Shown here piece by piece: positions 1-14,045 of a stretch of 64,000 nt of DNA (position 1 is its first letter; each line of letters begins with the position of its first letter). Source of the DNA: Marsupella aquatica (lineage: Eukaryota; Plantae; Marchantiophyta); the NCBI GenBank assembly GCA_973895155.1, contig OZ316898.1, positions 10,134,286 through 10,198,285 of the forward strand. The letters run 5' to 3'. The notes beneath the pieces were generated by a model. It saw nothing but the letters and a program-made list of their open reading frames with translations, searched no databases and was not told where the DNA came from. The position numbers were made by a program, and so were the translations under genes.

Positions 1-1614
1 GAAATTAGCACTATGAGGTAGCAAGCTACAAAATAGCATTTCCCACATTCTTAATGCATGGCATCGGAGCTCATTCCGCCTAGAAAACCAAAGCCACTAC
101 CAAAACTAACTTGCAAATGGAAGTTTGGACTAACCAGGGTGATTCAGGGCAGTTCAATGTCACTATGGCAGGTGCATTGCTGCTCGTAGCTGCAATGTAC
201 CTTAGCGCTCCCGGTCCCTCCACGGCTGCAACTTCCCAAGACCGGTCGGTCCCAGCCAGTCAGTCTTCTCTGAATCTTGGTGCGCCCACGTTGTCTCAAT
301 CCGAAGCTGTCAGGTCTCAGGCAGGAGACAAATCTCCGCTTGCCTTCGCGCCAAAAGTTGTCACTGGCCTCAAGAGCCTCTAAGGCAATGTCCGCAACGC
401 CTCAATGTCTCCAACACCTCAATGTCCTTACCATCAAGCGCTTCTCAGGGATGCCTCAATGTCCTTACCACCTCACGACTGTCAAGGTCCCAAACCAGCG
501 CAAACCACTTGCTGAACTCCTTTGTCCAAACAATTGTAAGGGGCATGCAGGTAGAACTGTCAAAAGCGCTCGCAGGAGTGGATGGCAACAATTGACTACA
601 ATCGCCTCCCAGCTTCCCTCGCAAAATGTTAACCCTAAACCCTACTCGTATGCTCCACTCATAGAAGCAAAGCACAATGTTCTGTCGCACAATGGGGCCC
701 GAACACATGGGCGCAAGTACTCGATAGTTCCCTTCACAAAAACCCAATAATCACCTGATGACCAAAGCACACTCACCCTAACCCAATACTTAGTGCAAGC
801 AGTCATGTAAGCTCGTTTCCGTTGAGGTGACCCGTTGAGCATAATAAGTACGTTTGCGCCAGAGTGTTAGGCAACACACAAAACTAAAGAGGGTTAAGGA
901 TAACTTTAAATAAATCCCTTTGGTGACAAAGTCATGGCCACTTAATTAGTTGTGGGCCCCCCTAACCCTCCCCCCCCCCTTGTGGAATTAATCTTGGATC
1001 AAAAGGCACCATCATTTACACTCAAATCAATCAAGTTGTGGACTGTTCATTGTGTCAATTAGTGCCCATGACCCTGTCAAAACAACACTAGTTGGCAATG
1101 CGGAATATATCATGGTGTGGGAGTTGTACCTAGCTAGGGTTATAGTGATGCATTAGTTCCGGTTCTGGTTAGAAACCACCCTAAGCCCTCCAGTACAGTT
1201 GTACCCTAAGTTATGAAAAGTACCCGTTACATGGATATTTATGGTGCAATGTTAGTTAAGGTTGGTGATATATACAAGGCATGTCCTTAAGCACTTAGGC
1301 CCAAAAGTAGGATGTCGCCCGGTCCTTCTTAAGTATACTCTTATCATGAACCCTTGTAAGACTTTGTCTTATACTAGTCTTTGTGTGGACCTTTAGAGTG
1401 ATTCCAAGAACAAAACCCATGATGTCCTAGAGTGTTCACCCTTCACAAAGTAGCAAGGTTACTTTTCATAGTCTTTAACTAAACCGAAAAACACTCAAAG
1501 TCTTTTATAGTCTTTAACAAAACCTTGGCAATGGGTGCAAGTCATTTAAAGTATGGAAGAAGGACTTAGTGGGCTTAGTCCTATAAGGTATGGTCTAAAT
1601 TACCCCGGTTTCTA

Positions 1615-4503
1615 CTAGTGATCTATCTTTCCTTGATTCCGATAAGGACCCACGTATATATCTCTGGTAGGTCCGTATACTCTCTCTTCAATTTCCTCTT
1701 CATTGACAAGGACTCTGGGAACTTCAGCAGCAACAACAATCTCCCCTTGGGAGCGTGGCCATTGAAAAGGGAAAATCAATGGTCTTTGATCAAGGAGCAA
1801 AGATTTATTCAATTCCCGTTGCTCTTCAAAAAACATTCTCCACCAGTTCACTTCCTCTTCTGAGAATAAAGTTTCAATTGCAAGTATTCCCTTTTGAATC
1901 TCATTTAACGAATCATCCATCTCCTTCAAAGTCATTCTTGAAGAACTAGACATATTTGGTTGAGTCCTTGTAACGTTCTTATCCCCCTTTTTGAAAAGGG
2001 GTAATCCGGGAGCACAACCCATCACCTTTTCTAGCTCCTCTTCCCTCAAAAATTTCACGCCTCCGTCAGGTTTCCAAGTTGAGTCCATGGAAAACTTCTT
2101 CCCCCATTGGGTTGGAACTTGATCTTCCAACTTGTCAAATGCAAATTTGTACTGGTGGTGGAAGGTAACATTTCGAATCCTTTCAATGACTAAAGGTGGA
2201 TCTGAGAAGGCATATTGACGGAAATCATATGTTTCCTTTAAAAGAGTGATATTTGGTTGGGGTTGATATGATTCACAAATAATATCACATAGGCTTTCGT
2301 ATGTGAATGCCTTAAACCTTGCTAGTCGTTTAGAAAATCGACTGAACATTTGATCTATTTGGTCGTGTGTGTGTCCAACCAACAAGAATCCTAGTTTGAT
2401 TTTCCGAAAAACCTTTCTTCGAATCAACATATGAAGATAGGCAAAGAGTAAATTATTTTTATTTTCTCTACTGGTATTATCAAGTTGAAGATAGAGAACA
2501 GGCGGCAAGCCACCAGGCTTTTCTTCCCATTCGTGAAACACCCTTTGCAGGATTGTGACTATCAAGTTTCCATCATTATGTAATACAGGATAATTAAGAA
2601 ACACTCTTGAAAATAGTGCACCATTGAAAACCAGGCATCCGACAACGTGCATTTGGATCAAACATGTTTCGTCCACCAATTTTGGGCGCCGCGGCCAATG
2701 AGGCAACCTTGTCTTCTTCTGATCCATCCCATCAATGACAACTCCCAAATATTTATCAGGATTTGAAAAACATTTCTTACGATGCTTCGCGAGTTTCTCA
2801 CGTTCTTTGGATTGTTGGTCTCTATGTTTTTGTAACATAATTTCCCCTCGCCCTGGAAAAACAACTTGTTAGTTTCTTAAAAAAAATAGAAATTATGTGC
2901 TAAGCCATATTCTTGAAACAAAAACTTGTCAAACTTGTAAGTACCTTACTCTTTTCGGTCTCCGAGACAGCTTTGTCCCGAATTGATTTGAACTCCTCGC
3001 AATCCGCGCAAGCACTGAATCGATTGACTGGAGGAATCTTCACATGACCAAATTCTTGAACCCAAACTTTCAAGAATTGTCGATAGGATATTTTTGATGA
3101 TTCATCAATCTTGGCATAGTTGGAGTCGTAGATCTTCCATACCTCCAGCTTTGAATAATTATCCGGTAAATGTGAAACTTCTTTATTTGGCAATGTTTCA
3201 ACGCGTGTCTCAAAAAATGACCTGAGCCAACTGACCAAGACTAATCTTTTAACAGATGGAGGGCGTCCAACTGGTTTAGAATATCCTAAGTCTTGGTTGT
3301 CTAATTTCAAAATTCTATTTAATCTATGATTGCCAACGCAAAATATAAGCTTGAAAGCTTTCCGACAAATACTCTTTTGACCAAACGTGTAAGATATAGT
3401 CTGCCTCCCTCCTTCATTTTTGTCTCGCTTTATAAGCCACTGCAAAGATAAAGACCGATCCTGAGATTTCTGCCTCAAAAATTTAGAACGCGCCTCACGA
3501 ATTTCTTTTGGAGATAGACTTAGGAGACAATGACTCTGACAACAGTACTTACTATTTGTTTTCTTGATATCCTCCTCTTTCAACTTTGTTTCACACAAAG
3601 TGGTGTTGCTCGTACGTTTGTAACGACTAGATGCCACCGGAACATCATCATCCTCCCCACTCTCCGAAGACTCGCTTTCATTCGATGATGAAATGGTCAC
3701 CAACATTTGCTTCTGAACATGCCGAGATTCCAGACCTGCAGCCTTCGGAGATGGAGGCTCTTCCTTCACTCTATGCAGCCTTGGAATACCTGGGCGTATT
3801 TCAGAAATCCCTCCATTACCGTGTAGGGACCCTTTCAATATTTTCCTAGGGTCCCTCTCCACCAGGTTGGTTTCCCTGTTTGAGTTTCCGTGACTTGATC
3901 CGCTCGCTGCCCCAACACCATGACTCCTAGGTAAAACTGAGGAACGCACATTAGAATTCCTTTCTGGAATACTTTTCAATAACACTGGTCGTCTAGTTTC
4001 ATCCCTCATCCCCCTGTGAAATGTTTCTGACGTTGGCTTACCAGAGGTTTTACTTTTTGGCATTTGCTTCAGCCACTGAACACTTTGGAGACTGCAAAAA
4101 TCTCTGTCATTTTCCCCACTTAGTGCCTTCTTTGTCTTTCCAAATCCAGTCTTCATGAATTCATGAGACCGTTTCCCAGACATCCAAATAGGCATTGAAC
4201 CTTCCAGATTACTCCCCAATTTGTCCTTTGTTGTTGACAAAGGAGATACAATTGACGTCCAGGGGGACCAATACTCTCCAAGGAGTCAGAGGAGCTCCCT
4301 GACCTCTCCTTACCACCGACCAATGATTTCTTCCCACTAATTGCAAGTCGTAAAGGACTACGTTTTAACTTGCTCATAGGGGTGGGGGGTGGCATATCTA
4401 AAATAGTAGTTATTCCAGGGATATCTGGGCCAACCACTGTGCAGGGGCCATCCGGCAATGAAACATCATCAGAATAATCATCTGATTCGTAACATGCCGC
4501 CAT
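1615..4503 (-). mobile_element. Sola-like (Sola1/DUF7869-type) DDD transposase gene, 2 exons, one frameshift near the 5' end
   Basis: Exon 1615-2852 carries the RNase H-fold motifs VIDGMDQ, LYLQLDNTSRENKN and FLLVGHTHDQID. The upstream exon carries the Cys motifs YCCQSHC, ICRKAFKLIFCV and FSACADC. A GT-AG intron at 2853-2949 joins them in frame (ETEK-R-RGEIMLQKH). ORF 4153-4503 joins ORF 2900-4240 only through a frameshift at ~4245-4285. Confidence 0.75.
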
Positions 4504-4605
4504 TGGAAAAACTAGTGCAAATTGACAAGAAACTCAGAAAATCAGTAAAATCTAACAAATCTTCTCAAAATAATGACCAAGAGTCATGAATAAACGAGCC
4601 TATTT

Positions 4606-5242
4606 GGCCTCATTCACAATTGGGTGTACCTCATAGGAACCACTTTCAGGACTCAAAAACATGTTTTTTAGTGAAAAATGACTTTTGTAACATGGAAAAA
4701 GCTTCATCATGATTTTATCTCAAGACATTCAAGTCTAATTTTTTCACAAGACTATTTTACATGGTGTAACCTACCTCACCATGTAGATAAATCAAGTTTT
4801 TAACTTTTTTAAGGGATCCTATTATTGATGGCCCTAAATAAGCCAAAATTACTGATTATTTTTGTCCTGTACATAAAGGTTTAGTGTGTGTCAATATTTG
4901 AGTTTTAAAATATAAGATTATTCTATTAGTATGCATGTCTTGGTAAAATTTCATTGTCTAAAATGCAAATTTTAGAGTCCTTTCGAGTCCTGAAATGATG
5001 TCACTCGTTGCATGACAAGTCCTTTTATCGATCTTTGAAGGACATATAAGGAAAGCTTCAAAGTCTCAAATGCTAGATAGTTTAATTAATGTTACCAACC
5101 TACAGGATGTTTATTAAGTATAGTACATCAAATTTTGCATATCATCTCATTACACCTTACAAATGATGTCCTAAAGCATAATAAACTATGGTCACTTTTG
5201 AGTGTGACGTTCCTTTTGGGTCCTCCAATTGTGAATGAGGCC
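4606..5242. mobile_element. Non-autonomous TIR element (MITE), 637 bp, Sola-type 4-bp TSD
   Basis: Perfect 18-bp TIR GGCCTCATTCACAATTGG (4606-4623 and 5225-5242), flanked by the direct repeat ATTT (4602-4605 and 5243-5246). The interior is AT-rich and non-coding. Confidence 0.85.
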
Positions 5243-5695
5243 ATTTATAGTTTTTCACAAATTGTTAGGACTTTTTAACTTCAAAAATATCAAATATTCA
5301 TGAAATTTACAAGCTTTTTCTCGTTAATACCCCAAAATATTCATGAATAATTGGCCCGAAAAACATTGATTTATCATGATTTGGGGTAAATTTTACTAAG
5401 TCGCGCCTGATCCGTGATTAGTATGTATAACCAAGGAACACGGGGCAGCCCATTCATTTTCACTCGATGTCATTTGGATTTCCTTTGTAAAAGAGTGAAA
5501 AACAATCTTGTTGTCCAATTTCGTGCCATTTTCAGCACTCATCGGCGACGTGTCACGAGTTGTCGTGGTCGCGCTTCATTCCGACCCTGTTTTAGGTGGT
5601 AATTTAGGCCCTGGGTGATTTCTTCACGTCACCCTCCCTCCGAACCCCATTTTGAATACCCTTTTGCATCACCGAGGTGTACAAGCAAAGAGAGA

Positions 5696-5760
5696 GGAGA
5701 CTCCCTTCATGAATTCATGAAGGTCGGTGCAAGAGGGAGACTCCCTTCATGAATTCATGA
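5696..5760. repeat. Duplicated palindromic motif GGAGACTCCCTTCATGAATTCATGA
   Basis: Two copies 40 bp apart. 5704-5723 (CCTTCATGAATTCATGAAGG) is a perfect 20-bp palindrome. Confidence 0.85.
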
Positions 5761-5925
5761 TAGGAGTCCTGGGGTGGCCGAGAGCGTTGTTAGATCCGTA
5801 AGGACACGGCTTTAGTAGCCATTTGTTGGCACATTCTTTGGTTCTGTGGCACTTTGTCTCGCAGGTTGGGGTTGAAGTGGACTGATTTTGTGGTATGTTC
5901 TCAGGTTTGAAGATCAGGCAAAAAC

Positions 5926-8900
5926 ATGACAATGTCGCAGGAAGAGCTGGTGGATGACATCTTTTCGCGCCATCCTTTGACGGACTTCCACAACTCATCC
6001 TGGACGATTTCCTTAGGGAAGGAAACATGGAAGAAACCTTCCTAATGCTGTGTGTATTTGAGGGGCTTCCATTAGGGGCATTAGGGTGGGTAAATTATGG
6101 CCGCATCGATGTATTTCGACGGGGCGACGAAGTTGTGAACATGTTGATCACAACGAAGGAAACATCAACTTTGATTGTCGTGGATGTGGAGAGGTTTTCC
6201 GGAACGGCTGCCACCTGCTATCTCGATGAGGACATCGATAGCATCATTGAGACTGTCAAGTCTCTTTCGAGTGAGGAACGTTACCACGACATCGCGGGAA
6301 AGATTTCTGGTTTTGTGTTCGAATTTCACGCTAGCACTTTAAAGAGTGCAATCCGAAAATCAAGAGAGATTCTCCAGAAAAGGTCGGCAGAGAAGGGGGT
6401 AAGTCGTCCACCCAAATCTGGGGCTTCCAGTGTTCCTTCTGGATCCAGGCCTAGCATTTTACCCGATGATATTTTGACCGTGGTAGCGCCTACAACCTCT
6501 CGGGAAGCAGCAGCATCTGGAGGGGGATCTCAAGTTGGCAGATCATCCTAGGGAACGGCTTTGATTGGTGGGTCGGCACAAGGTACGACTGGAACTTGCA
6601 CTTCTTCAAAGAAGCGACCTGCTATGACTCCTGAGCCTACTGAGCCCAGTGCTCCAAAGTCAAAAAAGAAGACTTTGGAGAAAATTCCAACGCATTTGGA
6701 GCAAAAGGCTCAATCAATGTCAATGGATGCACGGTATTGTACCAGGAGGAGATTCTGGGAAGATGTGGTGTTCAAGAGGAGACCGTGACCGTTGACATTG
6801 GTCAACTTTACCCTCCAGTGAGAGAGAAGGCTGTGGGCTTGCCCATTTACCAGGTCCGACACATCCAACCATATTTCTTGACCCAATTGACCTTGCGGAT
6901 GAAGACTGTAAGTGCCAGTCCACTTGCATCTCCGTTTGTCCTCTTGGTGGATCCAAAGGAGTGTGCTACTAGGCAAGACTTTGATTTTTCTGATTACCAT
7001 TATTATGTGATTGGGGGCAACCATTCAGCCTGTGCCAAAGCAGACCTTGCTCTTCAGTTCCCTAACAACAAGGCATTTCGGAGAGTGCAATCTTGGATAT
7101 TTGCTGGATTGAGTGTGCAAGAGGCAAGAAACCTGGCGTGGAGTCACAATATTGATTCTGAATTTCGACAACAGATGACGACAATCCAGAGAGTAAATTA
7201 TATTCACATGAGATTTGTGGAGAATGGATTGTCGTCCAACCAGGATTTCAAGAAAGAGTGTGCTACTGAAATCAATCTCAAGGATTGGGGTGTACGAAAG
7301 GATGCTGAAGTTCTTAATGCCAATGATAACTTATTTCAGTTGGCATTCCGACAAGATCCTGTGTGGTCATTTGTGAGGCAGATTTGTGACAAGTGGGAGA
7401 TGTGTGAGATCAAAGGTCAAAAAGGAGACAAGAGCAAGAAGAAAGTCTCTAAGTCTGGAGATGCCAAATTGCCTTATGAGGACATGAAATTAACAGAGTG
7501 GAGACACATGCAGGCCTTGGAAGATCCTGATATGATTTGCCCAGTGTTACAGAGAGTTCTTACTAAAGAACTCTCTTTACAGGAAATGGGTCACGAATTT
7601 ACTCGACACAAATTTCAGATGCAGGTGCAAAAGGCCTTCCTCACGTGTCTACACGAGGAGAGTTGGTCAGGTTGTAAAACCAAGTACCCTGAGCATTGCA
7701 CAGACAATGTGCTTAAGAATTTTGTACCTGTTTTCCAGACATGGGTAAGATTCTGTCACCTTTCTTCGAGTGATTGTTTGAATTCATTTAATATTTGGAA
7801 TCCTTGTTTCTAATTGTACGGTTCCTTTTTGTAGAAAGATACCACCTCCCGGAAAAAGAAGGGAGATGAGGAAGGCAAAGATCTCAAGTCATTCCCGGAC
7901 AAATTCAATGTGCATATTGTGCAAGCGCAAAATTGGCTATCCATGAAGACTTCTAGTCGGCAAACCCAAGAGGGGGAACTTCATCCAAATTTGTTTGAGC
8001 ATCCAGAGTTTGGTGATGTGCACTATGATATTTTTACTCATGATGCTCAGCGATTACACGAGGTGGTTCCAGGTCGGGCTTACACATTAGCTTTAGTACG
8101 TGGATATTCCCTACGGGTTTGCATTGCCTGGATGTCTTCATGAGGACACTATTGGATGGGGAACTGAGGAGATCACAAAAATGGTCCAATCGTTCAAGGT
8201 GGCTACTACTGCAAAGTTGTGGCGTATTATCATTCACCACAGCCTTGACCAATATGAGGCCATCAAGACCGTTTTGAAAGCGGAGTGTAATGGAGGGTTC
8301 ATGAATTGTGTGTGGTAAGAAATATTTGTTTTTGAAAAAAACAACTATTAGTTATTCATGATTTCATGAACCATGTTTCTAAGTTTAAATGACTCCTTGA
8401 CTTTTTGTGACTTTTCAGGGTTAAGGATAATGTGAAGAATGTTGGTGGACCAAGATTGAACAGCAACTTTGAGTGCTTTACAATTGGCTTTCACAGCCAG
8501 GATGGTAAACGGTCATTGGAGCACTTCAATTTTGACACAAATGAATCAAGGAACAATGTGGTTGTATGCGCAGCTGTGACTAAGAAGCTGAAACACAACG
8601 GGGATAACAAGGCAGTGAATGTCTATAACCACGTACATTGTTAGATTGGGAAGTGAGTCATTTTAGTCAGGTTGGAGACTGGGTTTTGGATATTTGTTCA
8701 GGATCAGGGACTGGGACAACCTCCTCCTTGGCCATGGGGAGACATTGCGTTGCCATTGAGATTGACGAGTGACAGAGCAGTGTGTTGAAAGGGAGGATTC
8801 TTAACCTTGCAGATAACATTGAAGAGGAAGACGGGCAGGGGGAGACGGATGAGGAGAGTGAGGAAGACATTCCTCGGGCCGGAGAGGATAGCGTGGTTGA

Positions 8901-8976
8901 CGATGCCACAATTGTTCCAGAATTGACGGCAGGGACTTCCGGAACCGAGGAAGGGGAAGTGGTCCCTTTGGATTAG
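5926..8976 (+). pseudogene. ParB/Srx-like domain fused to a beta-class N6-adenine/N4-cytosine DNA methyltransferase (spliced, disrupted)
   Basis: ParB-like segment at ~6790-7152 (YQVR...SPFVLLVD...YYVIGGNHSACA...EARNLAWSHN). MTase motif IV VDIPYG at 8100-8117, a WVK...FE segment, and motifs X/I PRTLLDWEVSHFSQVGDWVLDICSGSGTG...GRHCVAIEID at ~8630-8766. In-frame GT-AG introns at 7745-7834 and 8315-8418. Lesions: TAG 6549, frameshifts at ~6730, ~8097 and ~8627, and TGA 8770. The 5' start is uncertain. Confidence 0.8.
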
Positions 8977-9281
8977 ACTAGGTAAATAGAGGGACTCGTA
9001 GCATTTGAAACCACTTGGGCTTAAGTTGGGTTATATTTTGTAAAACTTTGAGTTTGACTTAAACTCTGATCAATGAGTTTGATTTTGACTACTTTTATAA
9101 AGTGCATATTTCAAGGTTTATACAATTGTGAGAATATCATATAAGATATGCTTAGATTTTGGTGGTAAAATTCTCTTGAGTCTAGTTTGGAAAATACATA
9201 CCATTTTTTGTGGTTTTTTGGTACACATTTTTGAATATCATGAAGATTTTGAAAAGAGAAATAAGGCTTTGGACTCATCCC

Positions 9282-11403
9282 TTAAGGCTTCTTGTTTGCT
9301 CTTTTTCTCATCAATTCTGGAAGAGGCAAGTCACAATGCCTCACTCTTGCTGATGGTGGGGGCTGTACAAGTTCCACATCTTGCTGTTGAGGTGTCCCTA
9401 GAGCATAGCTTGTTTGACCTCCTTCAAGTCCAATATGGGGTGTTGTGACAGTGGCTCTTCTTCTCTGTTCAGTTCTCCTGATTTGAGCCCCGTATAGGAA
9501 GCTCTGAACTAGGTCTTTCAGGTTCCATGGTCCCTTCTCTCTCAACATCATGAGGTGCTAAACTCAAAGGTCTCCTGTGCTACAATACTCTAACCTCAAC
9601 TGTATTGGTCCGCGAGCTCTGTTGCCCCTAATTTTTTCTTCTTGGCTGAATTGTTGTTTGACTTGACTGCTCCGTCCTGGCCAGTCTTCTTCCAACATCC
9701 CTTGTGGAAATGGGTGCACCAACCAGCTCTGCTTCATGCCTAAACCTAGTTCTCAAAGATGCAGATTCTAGTTCCTCTTCTTGACTCACAGGGCACTCCT
9801 CTATGTCATCCAAGATCTCCATATTATTTGTTGCATTTTCAAATTCTTGAGTTGAAAAAGATGGACATGAGAAATCAGAATCAAGGACTCCAAAACCGTG
9901 TGCAGGTTTTCTTGAGAGCCTTGAGTATATCAAGTCATCTTTTCTCTTCAACCGAGAAATGGACTGGTCCACATCTTCACCATCCCTTGCTTGGCCTTCC
10001 TTACTTGACTCATTCTGAACTACTACAATAGTGTTTCGTGCTCCCTTCTCCAGTCTTCTTCTTTCCACCCCAACTATGGGAAGCTCTGAACCAGGCCTTT
10101 GAATTGCAATCCTCTCACATCAGAAGGTGTTAAAGTAGATGGTCCCCTGAGCTCTAATTCCTTGACTTCTATCTCAGCTGTGTTGGTCCTTGAGCTTGGT
10201 TGCCCTCTGGTTTTTCTTGCTGGCACAACTCTTGCTTGAGCCGACAGCTTCCTCCTAGCCTGTATCCTTTGAGTTATATCAGCCTGTAAAATTGGTGTAC
10301 TTGAGGGTGTACTGACCTGAGTTCTCAAAGATAAAGGTTCCTCTTGTTGACTGATTGGGCACTCCTCTATATCATCCAAAATCTCCATAGTATTTGTTGC
10401 AATTTCAAGGGCATTTTCAATTTCCTGAGTTGAGAAAGATGGACATGAGAAATTAAAATCCAGGACTCCAAAACCTTGTGCATATTTGTTTTTGAGGCCC
10501 TTTAGTAAACCAAGTCCACTTTTCTCTTCAAGCCAGGGTTGGGCACGTGCAGTACGTCTAGTTCACTAACTGAATGGTATCATTAGTGGGAGGGATTGGA
10601 GGTGGAACACTACCCAATAAGATTGACATGAGTTTTTTCACAGGTGAAAGAGGAGAAATCTGGTTAGATCCAGGATCAGGTTGTGTTGCACCTGAAACTC
10701 AGTAGAAGGGTGAGTTGTACCAATTTGAGACTCACACAAATCCGACACAATTCTCAAACACTCAAAAGTTGACACTTTACTAATATCAATCCTTGGTGTG
10801 TCATCAGGCAAGGACAAGTCAGCATGTGCTGACTCCACTTCCAATGGACAGGTCCCAAGGCTATGTTGATGATCACTCGGGGGCCTCAATCCAAGGGGTG
10901 TCCCATATCACGCGCGAAGTTTTGGGGGAATAAACACCCTAAAATTTAAGTCAATAAAGTTTTTTTTAGGAATTTTTTTACCCATAATGTAATAGAATAT
11001 CCTATAAATATTCCTAGATTTGATTTAAAAAAACCCTATGATTCTTAGAATTCTCATAATTGGATTAAAATAACCCTAATATTCTTCAAATTTTTTTTAA
11101 GTATATCACTAAACCCAATAAAAAAACCCTATACTTATTCGCACGTGATGGGTAGGAAGAAAAGAAGTAAGGACCCCGGGGATGATCACTATCATCAAAT
11201 TCATCTTCATAAGGATCTTGTGATTCCTGGTGTGGGCCATCTTCATGAGAATCTTGCAATTCATGGCCTGTCCTTACATTGATAGCTTATGAACTCTTGG
11301 CTGGAGCTGCTCTTTCTCCCCTACACAAATTGTCCAAGGGCTGCGACCTTCTCTTCTTTGATCCATGTAGAGGCAATACTTGTGAACTTGAATCTTCTCT
11401 CAT
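9282..11403 (-). pseudogene. Decayed low-complexity (S/E/R-rich) coding region with an internal ~0.58-kb duplication, unknown product
   Basis: ORF pieces 9282-9551, 9628-10068, 10074-10388 and 10638-10889 share duplicated peptides (MEILDDIEECP[V/I]SQ; LVQSF). The frame continues across the insertion at 10876-11180 (EFDDSDH|QHSLG). Confidence 0.4.
10876..11180. mobile_element. Small MITE-like insertion (~305 bp) with 8-10-bp TSD
   Basis: GATGATCA(CT) is duplicated at 10868 and 11181. Imperfect termini CTCGGGGGCCT / AGGACCCCGGG, subterminal inverted repeat CCCATATCACGCGCGAA / TTCGCACGTGATGGG, and an AT-rich core. Confidence 0.7.
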
Positions 11404-12099: not shown

Positions 12100-12290
12100 C
12101 CACCCAGTAGGGTTGTTTGTTTGTTGTTTTCTCCTTTGTCTTTTGGTTTTATTTGCTTGGTTACTCATTGACCTCTTGGGCCTCGTTGGTCTTCTTGGGG
12201 TCTTTTGCTTCCCCCCTTTATTGGGTTTTTTTTGCCTTTGAGACCATGTCTCCCGATTTGGCGCTCCTGTCTTTTTGGTAGTGTTATATA
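12100..12290 (+). repeat. 3'-UTR fragment of the RLE-type LINE family seen at 57.3-58.2 kb
   Basis: Shares CCCC(T)TT.ATTGGGTTTT...TGTCTCC...GCGC.TCCTG..CTTT.GG.AG with the reverse complement of 57345-57430 and with 59050-59125. Confidence 0.55.
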
Positions 12291-12749
12291 TATCATGGAC
12301 ATTCCACCAATAAAAAACACATTCCTTAAGAAATATATTGGAAAAGATATGCAATGTCAGGAAATGCACTCCAAGGGTTACTTACATAGGTGAAATAACC
12401 CCGGCCAGTTCATTATCTATTAAATCTTCTATTTCAAAAAAATAATCCCCTTGTATAGTCAGGAATGTTTTACCGCAGATCTTTTGAGAAGCTAGATCAG
12501 ATCAATAATGGAAATATTTATTGGAGGTCGCTAATCAACACTTTCACTCCAACACCCTCTATTTTAATTGAGCATAAGCATCAACTCAAAATCAACAAGC
12601 ACGATGTAAGTTTTGTTATCGAATATTATGTTCCGGTGTCGTGATAATTCAATTATTCATGATGAAATAATTATCACTAAGTATATTATTTAATATATAG
12701 ATTAGGTTTATATTTTATTACAGGGTAACTAAATAGTTTGACTATTACT

Positions 12750-13110
12750 TATGTGCATGTAAGGTAAGCAACTATGCAAACCACAAGATGCATGCACAAA
12801 TTGTTTTATTTGCATACATTAGACTTTGTTTTATGTGCATGCAAGGTGAACAAATGTGCAAGCCACAAGGTGCATGCACAAATTGTTTTAGATGCATGCA
12901 AATTGTTTTAGATGCATGCAAATTGTTTTATTTGCATGCATTAGTTGTTTTATGCGCATGCAAGGTGAGCAAATGTGCAAGCCACAAAGTGCATGCATTA
13001 ATTGTTTTATGCGCATGCAAGGTGAGCAAATATGCAAGCCACAATGTGCATGCATGCACAAATTGTTTTAGGTGCATGAATTAGTTATTTTACTTGCATG
13101 CATCATTTGT
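12750..13110. repeat. Degenerate tandem repeat (ATGCATGCA / AATTGTTTTA / GCAAGGTGAGCAAATGTGCAAGCCACAA units)
   Basis: Four GCAAGCCACAA-type units and many ATGCA..AATTGTTTTA subunits are visible directly. Confidence 0.8.
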
Positions 13111-14045
13111 TTTAATTACAATAGTACTAACACACATTCTTATGTTGCATGTGTGCCACTTGGCTTTCATCCAAGCGATTGGGCGTAATTTATGCCCTCT
13201 TGGATTCAATATAAATAAAGTGATGAGGGACACTCTCTCCTCATTCCCACATTTTGATAATTTTTGCGTCAAAGCGATCATTTTTTCTTCTTTGATCTTT
13301 CTATTCTATTTTTTGCCTTATGTACATAGTGGTGAGGCATCCTTTGGCTCGGATAGCAAAAGAATGAGTGATAGACTTATAGATGGGACCTTAGGGAACA
13401 AAGTCTCTTTGGGAACTTAAGGGTTTGAGAATTCTTTGGCCCGGATAGCAAAGGAACAAGAGAGTCATTATGAAATCAAGAGAGAAAGATATACCTAATC
13501 TTCTCCTTCGTAATCCATTTTGGTTAGAGTCTATCTTTTAGACAAGCCATCCATGAGACAGTATTTAACTTTGGAGCTCAATTTGCAATTGTTGTTATGA
13601 GTTATAATGAGCCAATAGTGTACCCATTAGTGTCTTACCGAGAGGAGTGAGAGTGCATTATCTTTGTCCTTTATTGAAGTCATCGACCTAAATAGGAGTC
13701 CAGATGACATTTCTATTTCATTTTCTCTTGGAGATATTAGGATCGTATGTCGTTAAAAAATGAGTTTCCAAGATATGTTGATCCGCAAGTATGGTGAAGT
13801 AGGATTTAATAGTATATTAGTTTCACTTGAACCTTTTTTAATACCCACTATCCTTCTTATAAGAATTATCATTTTGATTTTAGTGTAGAACTTATGGGCA
13901 TGCAAGGTTGACTTTATAAGAGCCAACATGCTCTTACCAAAAATACGGTCACCCGAACACCGAAAGAGGGCTCCCCTTTGTGCATCTGTTTACGGATCCC
14001 ATGAGAGGTCCCTTCCAAATTCCTGGCAACAGAGTGTGCCACGTC

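Follow-up and report, generated by a model that had tools for sequence, protein, structure and literature searches.

What does the divergent pair of genes in this stretch of liverwort DNA represent: one transposon that carries its own DNA-modifying enzyme, or two unrelated neighbours? The stretch is a 64-kb window (the whole 64,000 nucleotides that were analysed) of Marsupella aquatica, contig OZ316898.1, positions 10,134,286 to 10,198,285. Two spliced genes lie in it head to head, a minus-strand transposase gene (4503-1621) and a plus-strand gene (5926-8976, the accessory gene) for a protein with ParB-like and beta-class amino-methyltransferase parts. The original prediction, made from the letters of the window, had the two genes diverging from a spacer of about 1.4 kb, or 0.8 kb without a miniature inverted-repeat transposable element (MITE), and took them for one mobile unit. 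The spacer agrees with this (Table 1), shrinking to ~0.78 kb once the MITE is subtracted, and both genes are considered to form one mobile unit of the Sola1 type with a probability of about 0.9. From related contigs, the full-length element of the family is predicted to measure ~8.8-9.5 kb and to be flanked by inverted repeats. The ParB-methyltransferase gene and the private palindromes of each family are long-conserved parts of the element.

The unity of the two genes was first seen as a proposal and is now borne out by recurrence, by bounded copies and by copy number with differing flanks. Counting loci with the same divergent pairing gave six further contexts, with transposase identity down to 37%; related loci are cited here by L numbers where they have to be told apart. 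L005, an 8.8-kb Logan contig, has uninterrupted open reading frames (ORFs) for all exons, and L007, a 7.7-kb contig of the Joint Genome Institute (JGI), also has uninterrupted exon ORFs. A second Logan place of the L007 family, known from its gene list only, has a cut 329-amino-acid minus-strand ORF upstream. The pair is decayed in L020, a 14-kb long-read contig, and is present with both genes truncated in L003 from Calypogeia fissa. In L023 from Riccia sorocarpa, the transposase is 37% identical to that of L005. The presence of the pair in the Riccia and Calypogeia lineages at this distance argues that the partnership is old and that the element has a use for the accessory gene. L012 overlaps L007 at 99.7% identity and carries that family beyond the transposase stop, while an exact-sequence look-up of the L007 transposase returned no record. 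A protein-pattern scan of metagenome contigs yielded 7 loci, in none of which the pairing could be scored, owing to short length or decay.

Bounded copies were found among the relatives. L020 has imperfect terminal inverted repeats (TIRs) of ~60 nt at 1310-1369 and 10736-10791, with exactly the two genes between them, and the L005 contig ends in a perfect 20-nt inverted repeat that is homologous to the L020 terminal region. L002, L009 and L010, from different samples, are identical through the methylase gene to ...GGCCTAGTGTT (...TTTTGGCCTAGTGTT) and then wholly divergent, which is what insertion of one element at several sites would produce. An exact-pattern scan of metagenome contigs for the terminus of the L002 family gave 0 matches; that collection evidently lacks the JGI contigs that carry the terminus. 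Accessory homologues come almost exclusively from short repeat-like contigs. In four sequencing runs of the source species, the window element is covered 10-30 times more deeply than its flank, and the family is multi-copy in this species.

The right end of the window copy can be placed near 9334 (+/- ~15 bases) because of a terminal motif at 9304-9320 and a drop in depth. The motif, TTTCTCATCAATTCTGG, written TTTCTCATC-N-ATT-N-TGG, has homologous counterparts in the termini of L002/L009/L010 and L020, and the contig depth summed over the four runs falls 10-30-fold from bins 9152-9348 to bins 9349-9545. As a separate observation on this region, contigs of three runs (X1, X2 and X4) skip 235 bases of the 3' subterminal region at 8981-9217; this piece was either lost in some family copies or gained in the window copy. 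At the left, transposase homology stops at 1621, directly beside the terminus of a CACTA element (boundary 1620/1621). The CACTA element is read as inserted into the 3' part of the transposase gene, with the remainder of the Sola1 element beyond its far end, outside the window. The original prediction had identified no outer TIRs, and none were found when an outer pair was sought within the 64-kb window, nor was the L005 end sequence found there. The CACTA cut at 1620 accounts for this lack, since the insertion removes both the C-terminus of the transposase and the left end of the element.

Table 1. Coordinates of the parts of the window element and of the adjoining CACTA terminus (window positions).
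Feature	Positions	Strand	Remarks
Terminus CACTAGTAGAAACCGGGG of neighbouring CACTA element	1603-1620	-	single exact match in 64 kb; outside the Sola1 element
Transposase exon 2	2852-1621	-	DDD catalytic core; cut off after ~residue 412
Transposase intron	2949-2853	-	GTAAGG...CAG, GT..AG, phase 1; position kept, length variable in five lineages
Transposase exon 1	4503-2950	-	Cys-rich N-terminal part; frameshift near 4153-4240; family palindrome 4153-4166
Divergent intergenic (promoter) region	4504-5925		1,422 bp; palindromes at 5704-5723 and 5747-5760
MITE in spacer	4606-5242		637 bp; 18-19-nt perfect TIR GGCCTCATTCACAATTGG
Accessory exon 1	5926-7744	+	N-terminal beta-rich domain, disordered linker, ParB-like domain (YYVIGGNHSACAK)
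Accessory intron 1	7745-7834	+	TGG|GTAAGA...TAG|AAAGA; phase 0; conserved
Accessory exon 2	7835-8314	+	N-terminal half of methyltransferase; motif IV VDIPYG
Accessory intron 2	8315-8418	+	holds palindrome copy 8356-8369; canonical ends, conserved phase
Accessory exon 3	8419-8976	+	YQKP-type motif (broken in window), motif I DICSGSGTG, acidic tail
3' subterminal region and probable right terminus	8977-9334	+	terminal motif and depth drop

The transposase had been described as Sola-like from its DDD motifs, and this description held. The ORF at 1615-2838 on the minus strand matches Pfam DUF7869 with an E-value of 1.9e-50. The catalytic blocks of the window (VIDGMDQ, LDNTSRENKNN and VGHTHDQIDQMFS) correspond to those of the Sola1-1_Ec32 transposase (MMDGANQ, VDNTVAENKNN and VGHTHIQIDQIFS; supplement, PMC12477816), and in a comparison by eye the three blocks and the layout with a Cys-rich N-terminal part agree. 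The catalytic exon has many relatives in Riccia, and others were found in Chara, a fern, corals, a sponge, echinoderms and lancelets. The uninterrupted relative L005 aligns to exon 1 at 4515-4366 and 3619-2915 and to exon 2 at 2847-1618, with 63% identity between the window exon 2 and the L005 transposase. About 150 C-terminal transposase residues are absent across the whole window, and this portion is the one that the CACTA insertion took from the window copy. In uninterrupted transposases it forms a C-terminal domain of ~150 residues (L005 7687-8146, residues ~414-565, ...MFWVAKVERILLLDENSIPRTISVLWYN...) which has no Pfam match and may be a small beta-barrel chromatin reader. Pfam likewise gave no match for transposase exon 1 or for the C-terminal 181 transposase residues. 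Behind another Sola1 transposase gene, 50% identical to that of the window, opposite-strand HSP90 fragments follow directly (L006 5056-6089), and they are either a captured host piece or flank.

Both genes of the window copy were predicted to carry disabling lesions, and both do. The transposase has one frameshift and lost its C-terminus, and the accessory gene changes frame four times, near 6036, 6732, 8096 and 8626; exon 3 has an in-frame stop besides the 4-base loss after 8626. High-depth contigs of the source species, ~98.5% identical to the window over the compared region 6000-9348 (the accessory-gene half, with the transposase outside), differ from it by an additional C after 6036, an additional G after 6732, the lack of 4 bases at 8096 and an additional CAGA after 8626. 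Since these contigs are free of them, the four accessory-gene lesions are private to the window copy. Together with the MITE in the promoter and the CACTA element at the left, these defects characterize the window copy, which is inert. From 1621 to ~9334, it is a dead, left-truncated member of an autonomous liverwort Sola1-type family. The MITE is flanked by a 4-bp target-site duplication (TSD), read by eye as ATTT (4602-4605 / 5243-5246). A 4-bp duplication is also of the Sola type, which need not mean that the MITE is related to its host element.

The accessory gene appears to have been kept by selection in its intact lineages. Between lineages, synonymous sites are saturated, yet the exon ORFs are uninterrupted and the motifs retained. 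The ratio of nonsynonymous to synonymous substitution rates (dN/dS) could be computed for 3 of 10 pairs in exon 3 and for 2 of 6 in exon 2, with values of 0.12-0.4 for these methylase exons; the ParB exon, again with 2 computable pairs of 6, gave 0.49-0.66. A common history of transposase and methyltransferase, which the original prediction had named as a check, fared less clearly: the identity matrices of the transposase and the ParB part run parallel, with L007 farthest in each and the window and L020 closest, although the four lineages compared are too few taxa for a real co-phylogeny test.

The accessory protein had been credited with ParB-like and beta-class methyltransferase motifs, and both parts were recovered, the first as a fold and the second as a sequence family. 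Searches and folds were run with single exons, so that the methyltransferase domain was covered as two separate halves, one in exon 2 and the other in exon 3. For exon 1 of the L005 accessory gene, an AlphaFold model was built from an alignment of 11 sequences. Foldseek returned Noc, ParB, KorB, PadC, Spo0J and sulfiredoxin as the top matches, with a probability of 1.0 and E-values of 1e-4 to 1e-3. With moderate confidence, this model points to an N-terminal fold of the ParB kind with a DNA-binding helix-turn-helix domain behind it. The ParB part gave no match in the PDB, either by sequence or by profile. Fungal DUF3723 clusters, which came up for the ParB part in the ESM Atlas, were set aside since Pfam gave no confirmation. 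Upstream of it, the N-terminal 150 residues (L005 1606-3591, accessory residues 20-170) fold at a predicted local distance difference test score (pLDDT) of 80-89 into a beta-rich domain followed by three helices; its sequence is conserved (WTV-LG...GRID), and it could be assigned to no family.

The methyltransferase part has the permuted order of the beta class, with motif IV (DIPYG, exon 2) upstream of motif I (CSGSGTG, exon 3). Across an alignment of seven lineages, [AV]-D-[VI]-P-Y-G is kept in exon 2, and Y-Q-K-P followed by D-L-C-S-G-S-G-T-G in exon 3. The one exception is L004 from C. fissa, with R instead of G after the motif IV Y and with D and Y still in place. Exon 3 of L005 matches Pfam N6_N4_Mtase (PF01555) with an E-value of 5.2e-10 and 40.1 bits (cutoff 26.7), and its PDB matches are the beta-class enzymes TTHA0409, CcrM, M.MboIIA and M.RsrI. 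Exon 3 also matches methylases in 105 phage records, and exon 2 has no match in phage records. In enzymes of this kind, motif IV begins with D or N when adenine is the target and with S in the N4-cytosine enzymes. Since it begins with D here, adenine is the likelier target, and N6-methyladenine (6mA) would be a likelier product than N4-methylcytosine.

A further property common to both genes is a family-specific palindrome. Exact TCATG-N4-CATGA sites occur four times in the 64-kb window, and all four are inside the element, at 4153, 5707, 5747 and 8356, where chance alone would give ~0.06 sites per 64 kb (by arithmetic, with no shuffle). The palindrome of the window family is TCATGAATTCATGA, and the copy in intron 2 (8356-8369) differs from it by one substitution, TCATGATTTCATGA. 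At the same positions, relatives have palindromes with other centres, AATT, CCGG, CTAG, ATAT or others. L007 has GGACTCATGAATTCATGAGTCC in the promoter, and the L007/L012 family has TCATGCCGGCATGA in accessory intron 2 and in an array that follows the transposase gene. This array, in L012 at 3925-4290, consists of at least 7 copies of GGACTCATGCCGGCATGAGTCC with a 30-bp period, directly behind the transposase stop; given its CCGG centre versus the AATT centre in the promoter, one family can hold two variants. Upstream of the accessory gene and in intron 2, L013 has CCTTCATGCTAGCATGAAGG and L001 has CTTCATACATGTATGAAG. L014 and L020 have CCTTCATGATATCATGAAGG in the promoter and in intron 2, and the promoter of L005 has a palindrome of the TTCAAGCCGGCTTGAA type. 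Accessory intron 2 holds a palindrome in every lineage examined, C. fissa included, and in L005 and L020 the transposase intron has one too. This is the arrangement that would be expected if the ParB-like domain recognised putative sites of its own element.

Two further palindromes were seen in the relatives. In L023 from Riccia sorocarpa, the ParB-like match of this distant Sola1 element (7528-6470, minus strand) is followed just past its 3' end by a perfect 34-nt palindrome with TCATG arms and a 6-nt centre, CCATGAGTTTCATGGACGTCCATGAAACTCATGG (6399-6432). Beyond the end of the Sola1 element in L020, arrays of another palindrome, GTTTCACGCGC-CAAG-GCGCGTGAAAC, extend over 12222-13921 and adjoin an ORF of 370 amino acids with a weak DUF8039 mark. 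The arms of this palindrome presumably resemble bacterial parS half-sites, and the region may be a second, unrelated palindrome-bearing element.

A number of observations weigh against this picture, in part or as a whole. The Sola1 assignment is a comparison of motifs by eye with the published Sola1-1_Ec32. In L020, which is the sole copy with both ends and is decayed, the flanks have no matching 4-mer that could be a TSD, and the outermost two bases are mismatched between the ends. Of the shared ends, TIRs and 4-bp TSDs anticipated for aligned copies, the first two were thus recovered (TIRs in L020 and L005, a common terminus in L002/L009/L010) and the duplication was not. In L004 the accessory gene is complete and the 9 kb upstream of it hold no transposase; this locus may be a deletion derivative. 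As for the ParB part, Pfam found no ParB (ParBc) domain in the ParB exon, the L005 model has a mean pLDDT of 63.7 and a target template-modelling (TM) score of ~0.43, and an invariant V-I-G-G-N-H-S stands where canonical ParB has the arginine box GERR. Since GERR is replaced by GGNHS, which is nearer to the GGCHR of sulfiredoxin, canonical binding of cytidine triphosphate (CTP) is doubtful. In the methyltransferase, the first proline of motif IV is V or I in all lineages (D-[I/V]-P-Y, not the canonical D-P-P-Y), and motif I reads D-L-C where D-P-F is expected. Because V/I replaces the first proline of DPPY throughout, activity is plausible and not assured; a catalytically active enzyme is slightly favoured.

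If the enzyme is active, the most likely mechanism would be the following. The ParB-like domain would recognise the family palindromes as ParB recognises parS, and the attached methyltransferase would thereby be brought to the DNA of its own element and mark it. The mark might adjust the activity of the divergent promoter, modulate transposition itself, or protect the element against silencing by the host. This complete scheme, in which the protein binds its own palindromes and methylates around them, is put forward tentatively, at somewhat less than even odds. A stricter form of it is more doubtful still: each liverwort Sola1 lineage would have a private system of address and mark, with a ParB-like domain that reads its own palindrome only and an enzyme that writes 6mA on the copies of the family. 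If this were true, every transposon lineage would maintain an epigenetic state that it recognises as its own and that controls either promoter or transposition, within a land-plant genome where 5-methylcytosine (5mC) is otherwise the governing mark.

The alternative that survives best keeps the same unit and takes the methyltransferase for a pseudo-enzyme, so that the protein would be a sequence-specific DNA-binding accessory factor which writes no methyl mark. The palindromes would then be gathered for the assembly of a transposition complex or for promoter regulation, like CACTA TnpA on subterminal repeats. The V or I in place of the first motif IV proline in every lineage is in line with such a loss of activity, and promoter, intron and subterminal positions are typical of regulatory or transpososome sites. 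However, the D and Y of motif IV, the QKP and the G-x-G-x-G for S-adenosylmethionine (SAM) binding are kept despite synonymous saturation, although they would be superfluous for a pure DNA binder, and exon 3 scores above Pfam's own threshold for PF01555. A pseudo-enzyme is therefore regarded as a rather unlikely, if serious, possibility.

It is very improbable that two genes of different elements, or an element and a host gene, came to be adjacent by chance. The window without an outer TIR pair and the accessory gene of L004 without a transposase within 9 kb would suit such an accident, but the orientation and spacing repeat in the six other contexts, the TIRs of L020 enclose exactly both genes, and one palindrome is common to the introns of both genes and to their shared spacer. 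Equally hard to credit is a domesticated plant ParB-methyltransferase gene with the transposase as an intruder, since the accessory gene, despite its introns and its seemingly selective conservation, lies inside a repeat 10-30 times deeper than the flank, is followed by three different flanks beyond the same terminus, is decayed in the window and in other copies, and has its homologues almost only in short repeat-like contigs.

Some features were also noted in the DNA next to the element. Just outside it, in low-depth DNA, two adjacent ORFs on the minus strand (9628-10388) have a common repeated block, N/MEILDDIEECP-V/I-SQ...; Pfam gave no match for the flanking ORFs at 9285-10388. Further on, 10728-11318 is a very high-copy repeat, whose summed contig depth exceeds that of the flank 50-fold to several hundredfold in each of the four runs and which has many loose ends at 10876; it is probably a very abundant short element.

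Transposons with a DNA-modifying enzyme of their own and an address sequence would write epigenetic marks outside the control of the host. The existence of functional 6mA in land plants is disputed, and the liverwort elements offer a concrete, testable case: there are copies with unbroken exon ORFs, the catalytic motifs are retained, and the palindromes are defined. In IS10/Tn10 and Tn5, transposition is coupled to replication through adenine methylation by the host Dam enzyme, at sites in the transposase promoter and the ends. These elements are a working analogy for an amino-methylase encoded by the transposon itself, with the difference that their methylase is encoded by the host.

Compared with known proteins, the methyltransferase part is like the PF01555 enzymes M.RsrI, CcrM, M.MboIIA and TTHA0409 in that motif IV comes ahead of motif I, a QKP precedes motif I and a G-S-G-T loop is present. 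It differs from them in D-[I/V]-P-Y, in its two spliceosomal introns and in its ParB-like and beta-rich N-terminal fusions. The two phage methylases that were inspected are stand-alone proteins of ~100-250 residues, unlike the fused liverwort protein. With the CTP-dependent clamps ParB, Noc and KorB, the accessory protein has in common the predicted N-terminal fold with a helix-turn-helix, and cognate-looking palindromes cluster on the same DNA. Unlike these, it has GGNHS for GERR and no Pfam or sequence-profile match, and it belongs to a eukaryotic nuclear transposon.

Literature searches turned up no published report of such elements from liverworts or from any other land plant, and the closest systems are algal. 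In the red alga Bostrychia, Plavaka, a CACTA-related element with the accessory genes PAG2 and PAG3, also has a transposon-borne ParB-like protein beside tandem inverted-repeat arrays, with proposed self-binding and self-modification, and also carries an N6-adenine methylase domain (bioRxiv 10.1101/2025.02.11.637652). It differs in that ParB is fused to a 2-oxoglutarate (2OG)-dependent oxygenase, the methylase is on a separate SET-domain protein, and the transposase is of another superfamily. The nearest counterpart is Sola1-1_Ec32 of the brown alga Ectocarpus (Genome Biology, September 2025, PMC12477816), an element of 21.5 kb with 4-bp TSDs, 282-bp TIRs and AACCG..CGGTT termini. On the strand opposite to its transposase, it encodes a protein of 1,104 residues with ParB-like and N4-cytosine/N6-adenine methyltransferase domains, which its authors propose to bind and epigenetically modify its own transposon (PMC12477816). 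The statement in the original prediction that Sola elements carry a transposase only is thus outdated. The liverwort elements have the same three transposase motifs and likewise encode, inside the element and opposite the transposase, a ParB-like and amino-methylase protein, a likeness that is drawn from the published description of the algal accessory protein. They differ in their size of 8.8-9.5 kb, in their TIRs of ~30-60 nt that end in ...GTGTT on the methylase side, and in their palindromes at fixed positions in each family, while the word 'palindrome' is never mentioned in PMC12477816. The liverwort elements are, then, a further case of the kind described in algae in 2025, and extend to land plants a partnership of Sola1 and ParB-methylase that had been reported once, in a brown alga.

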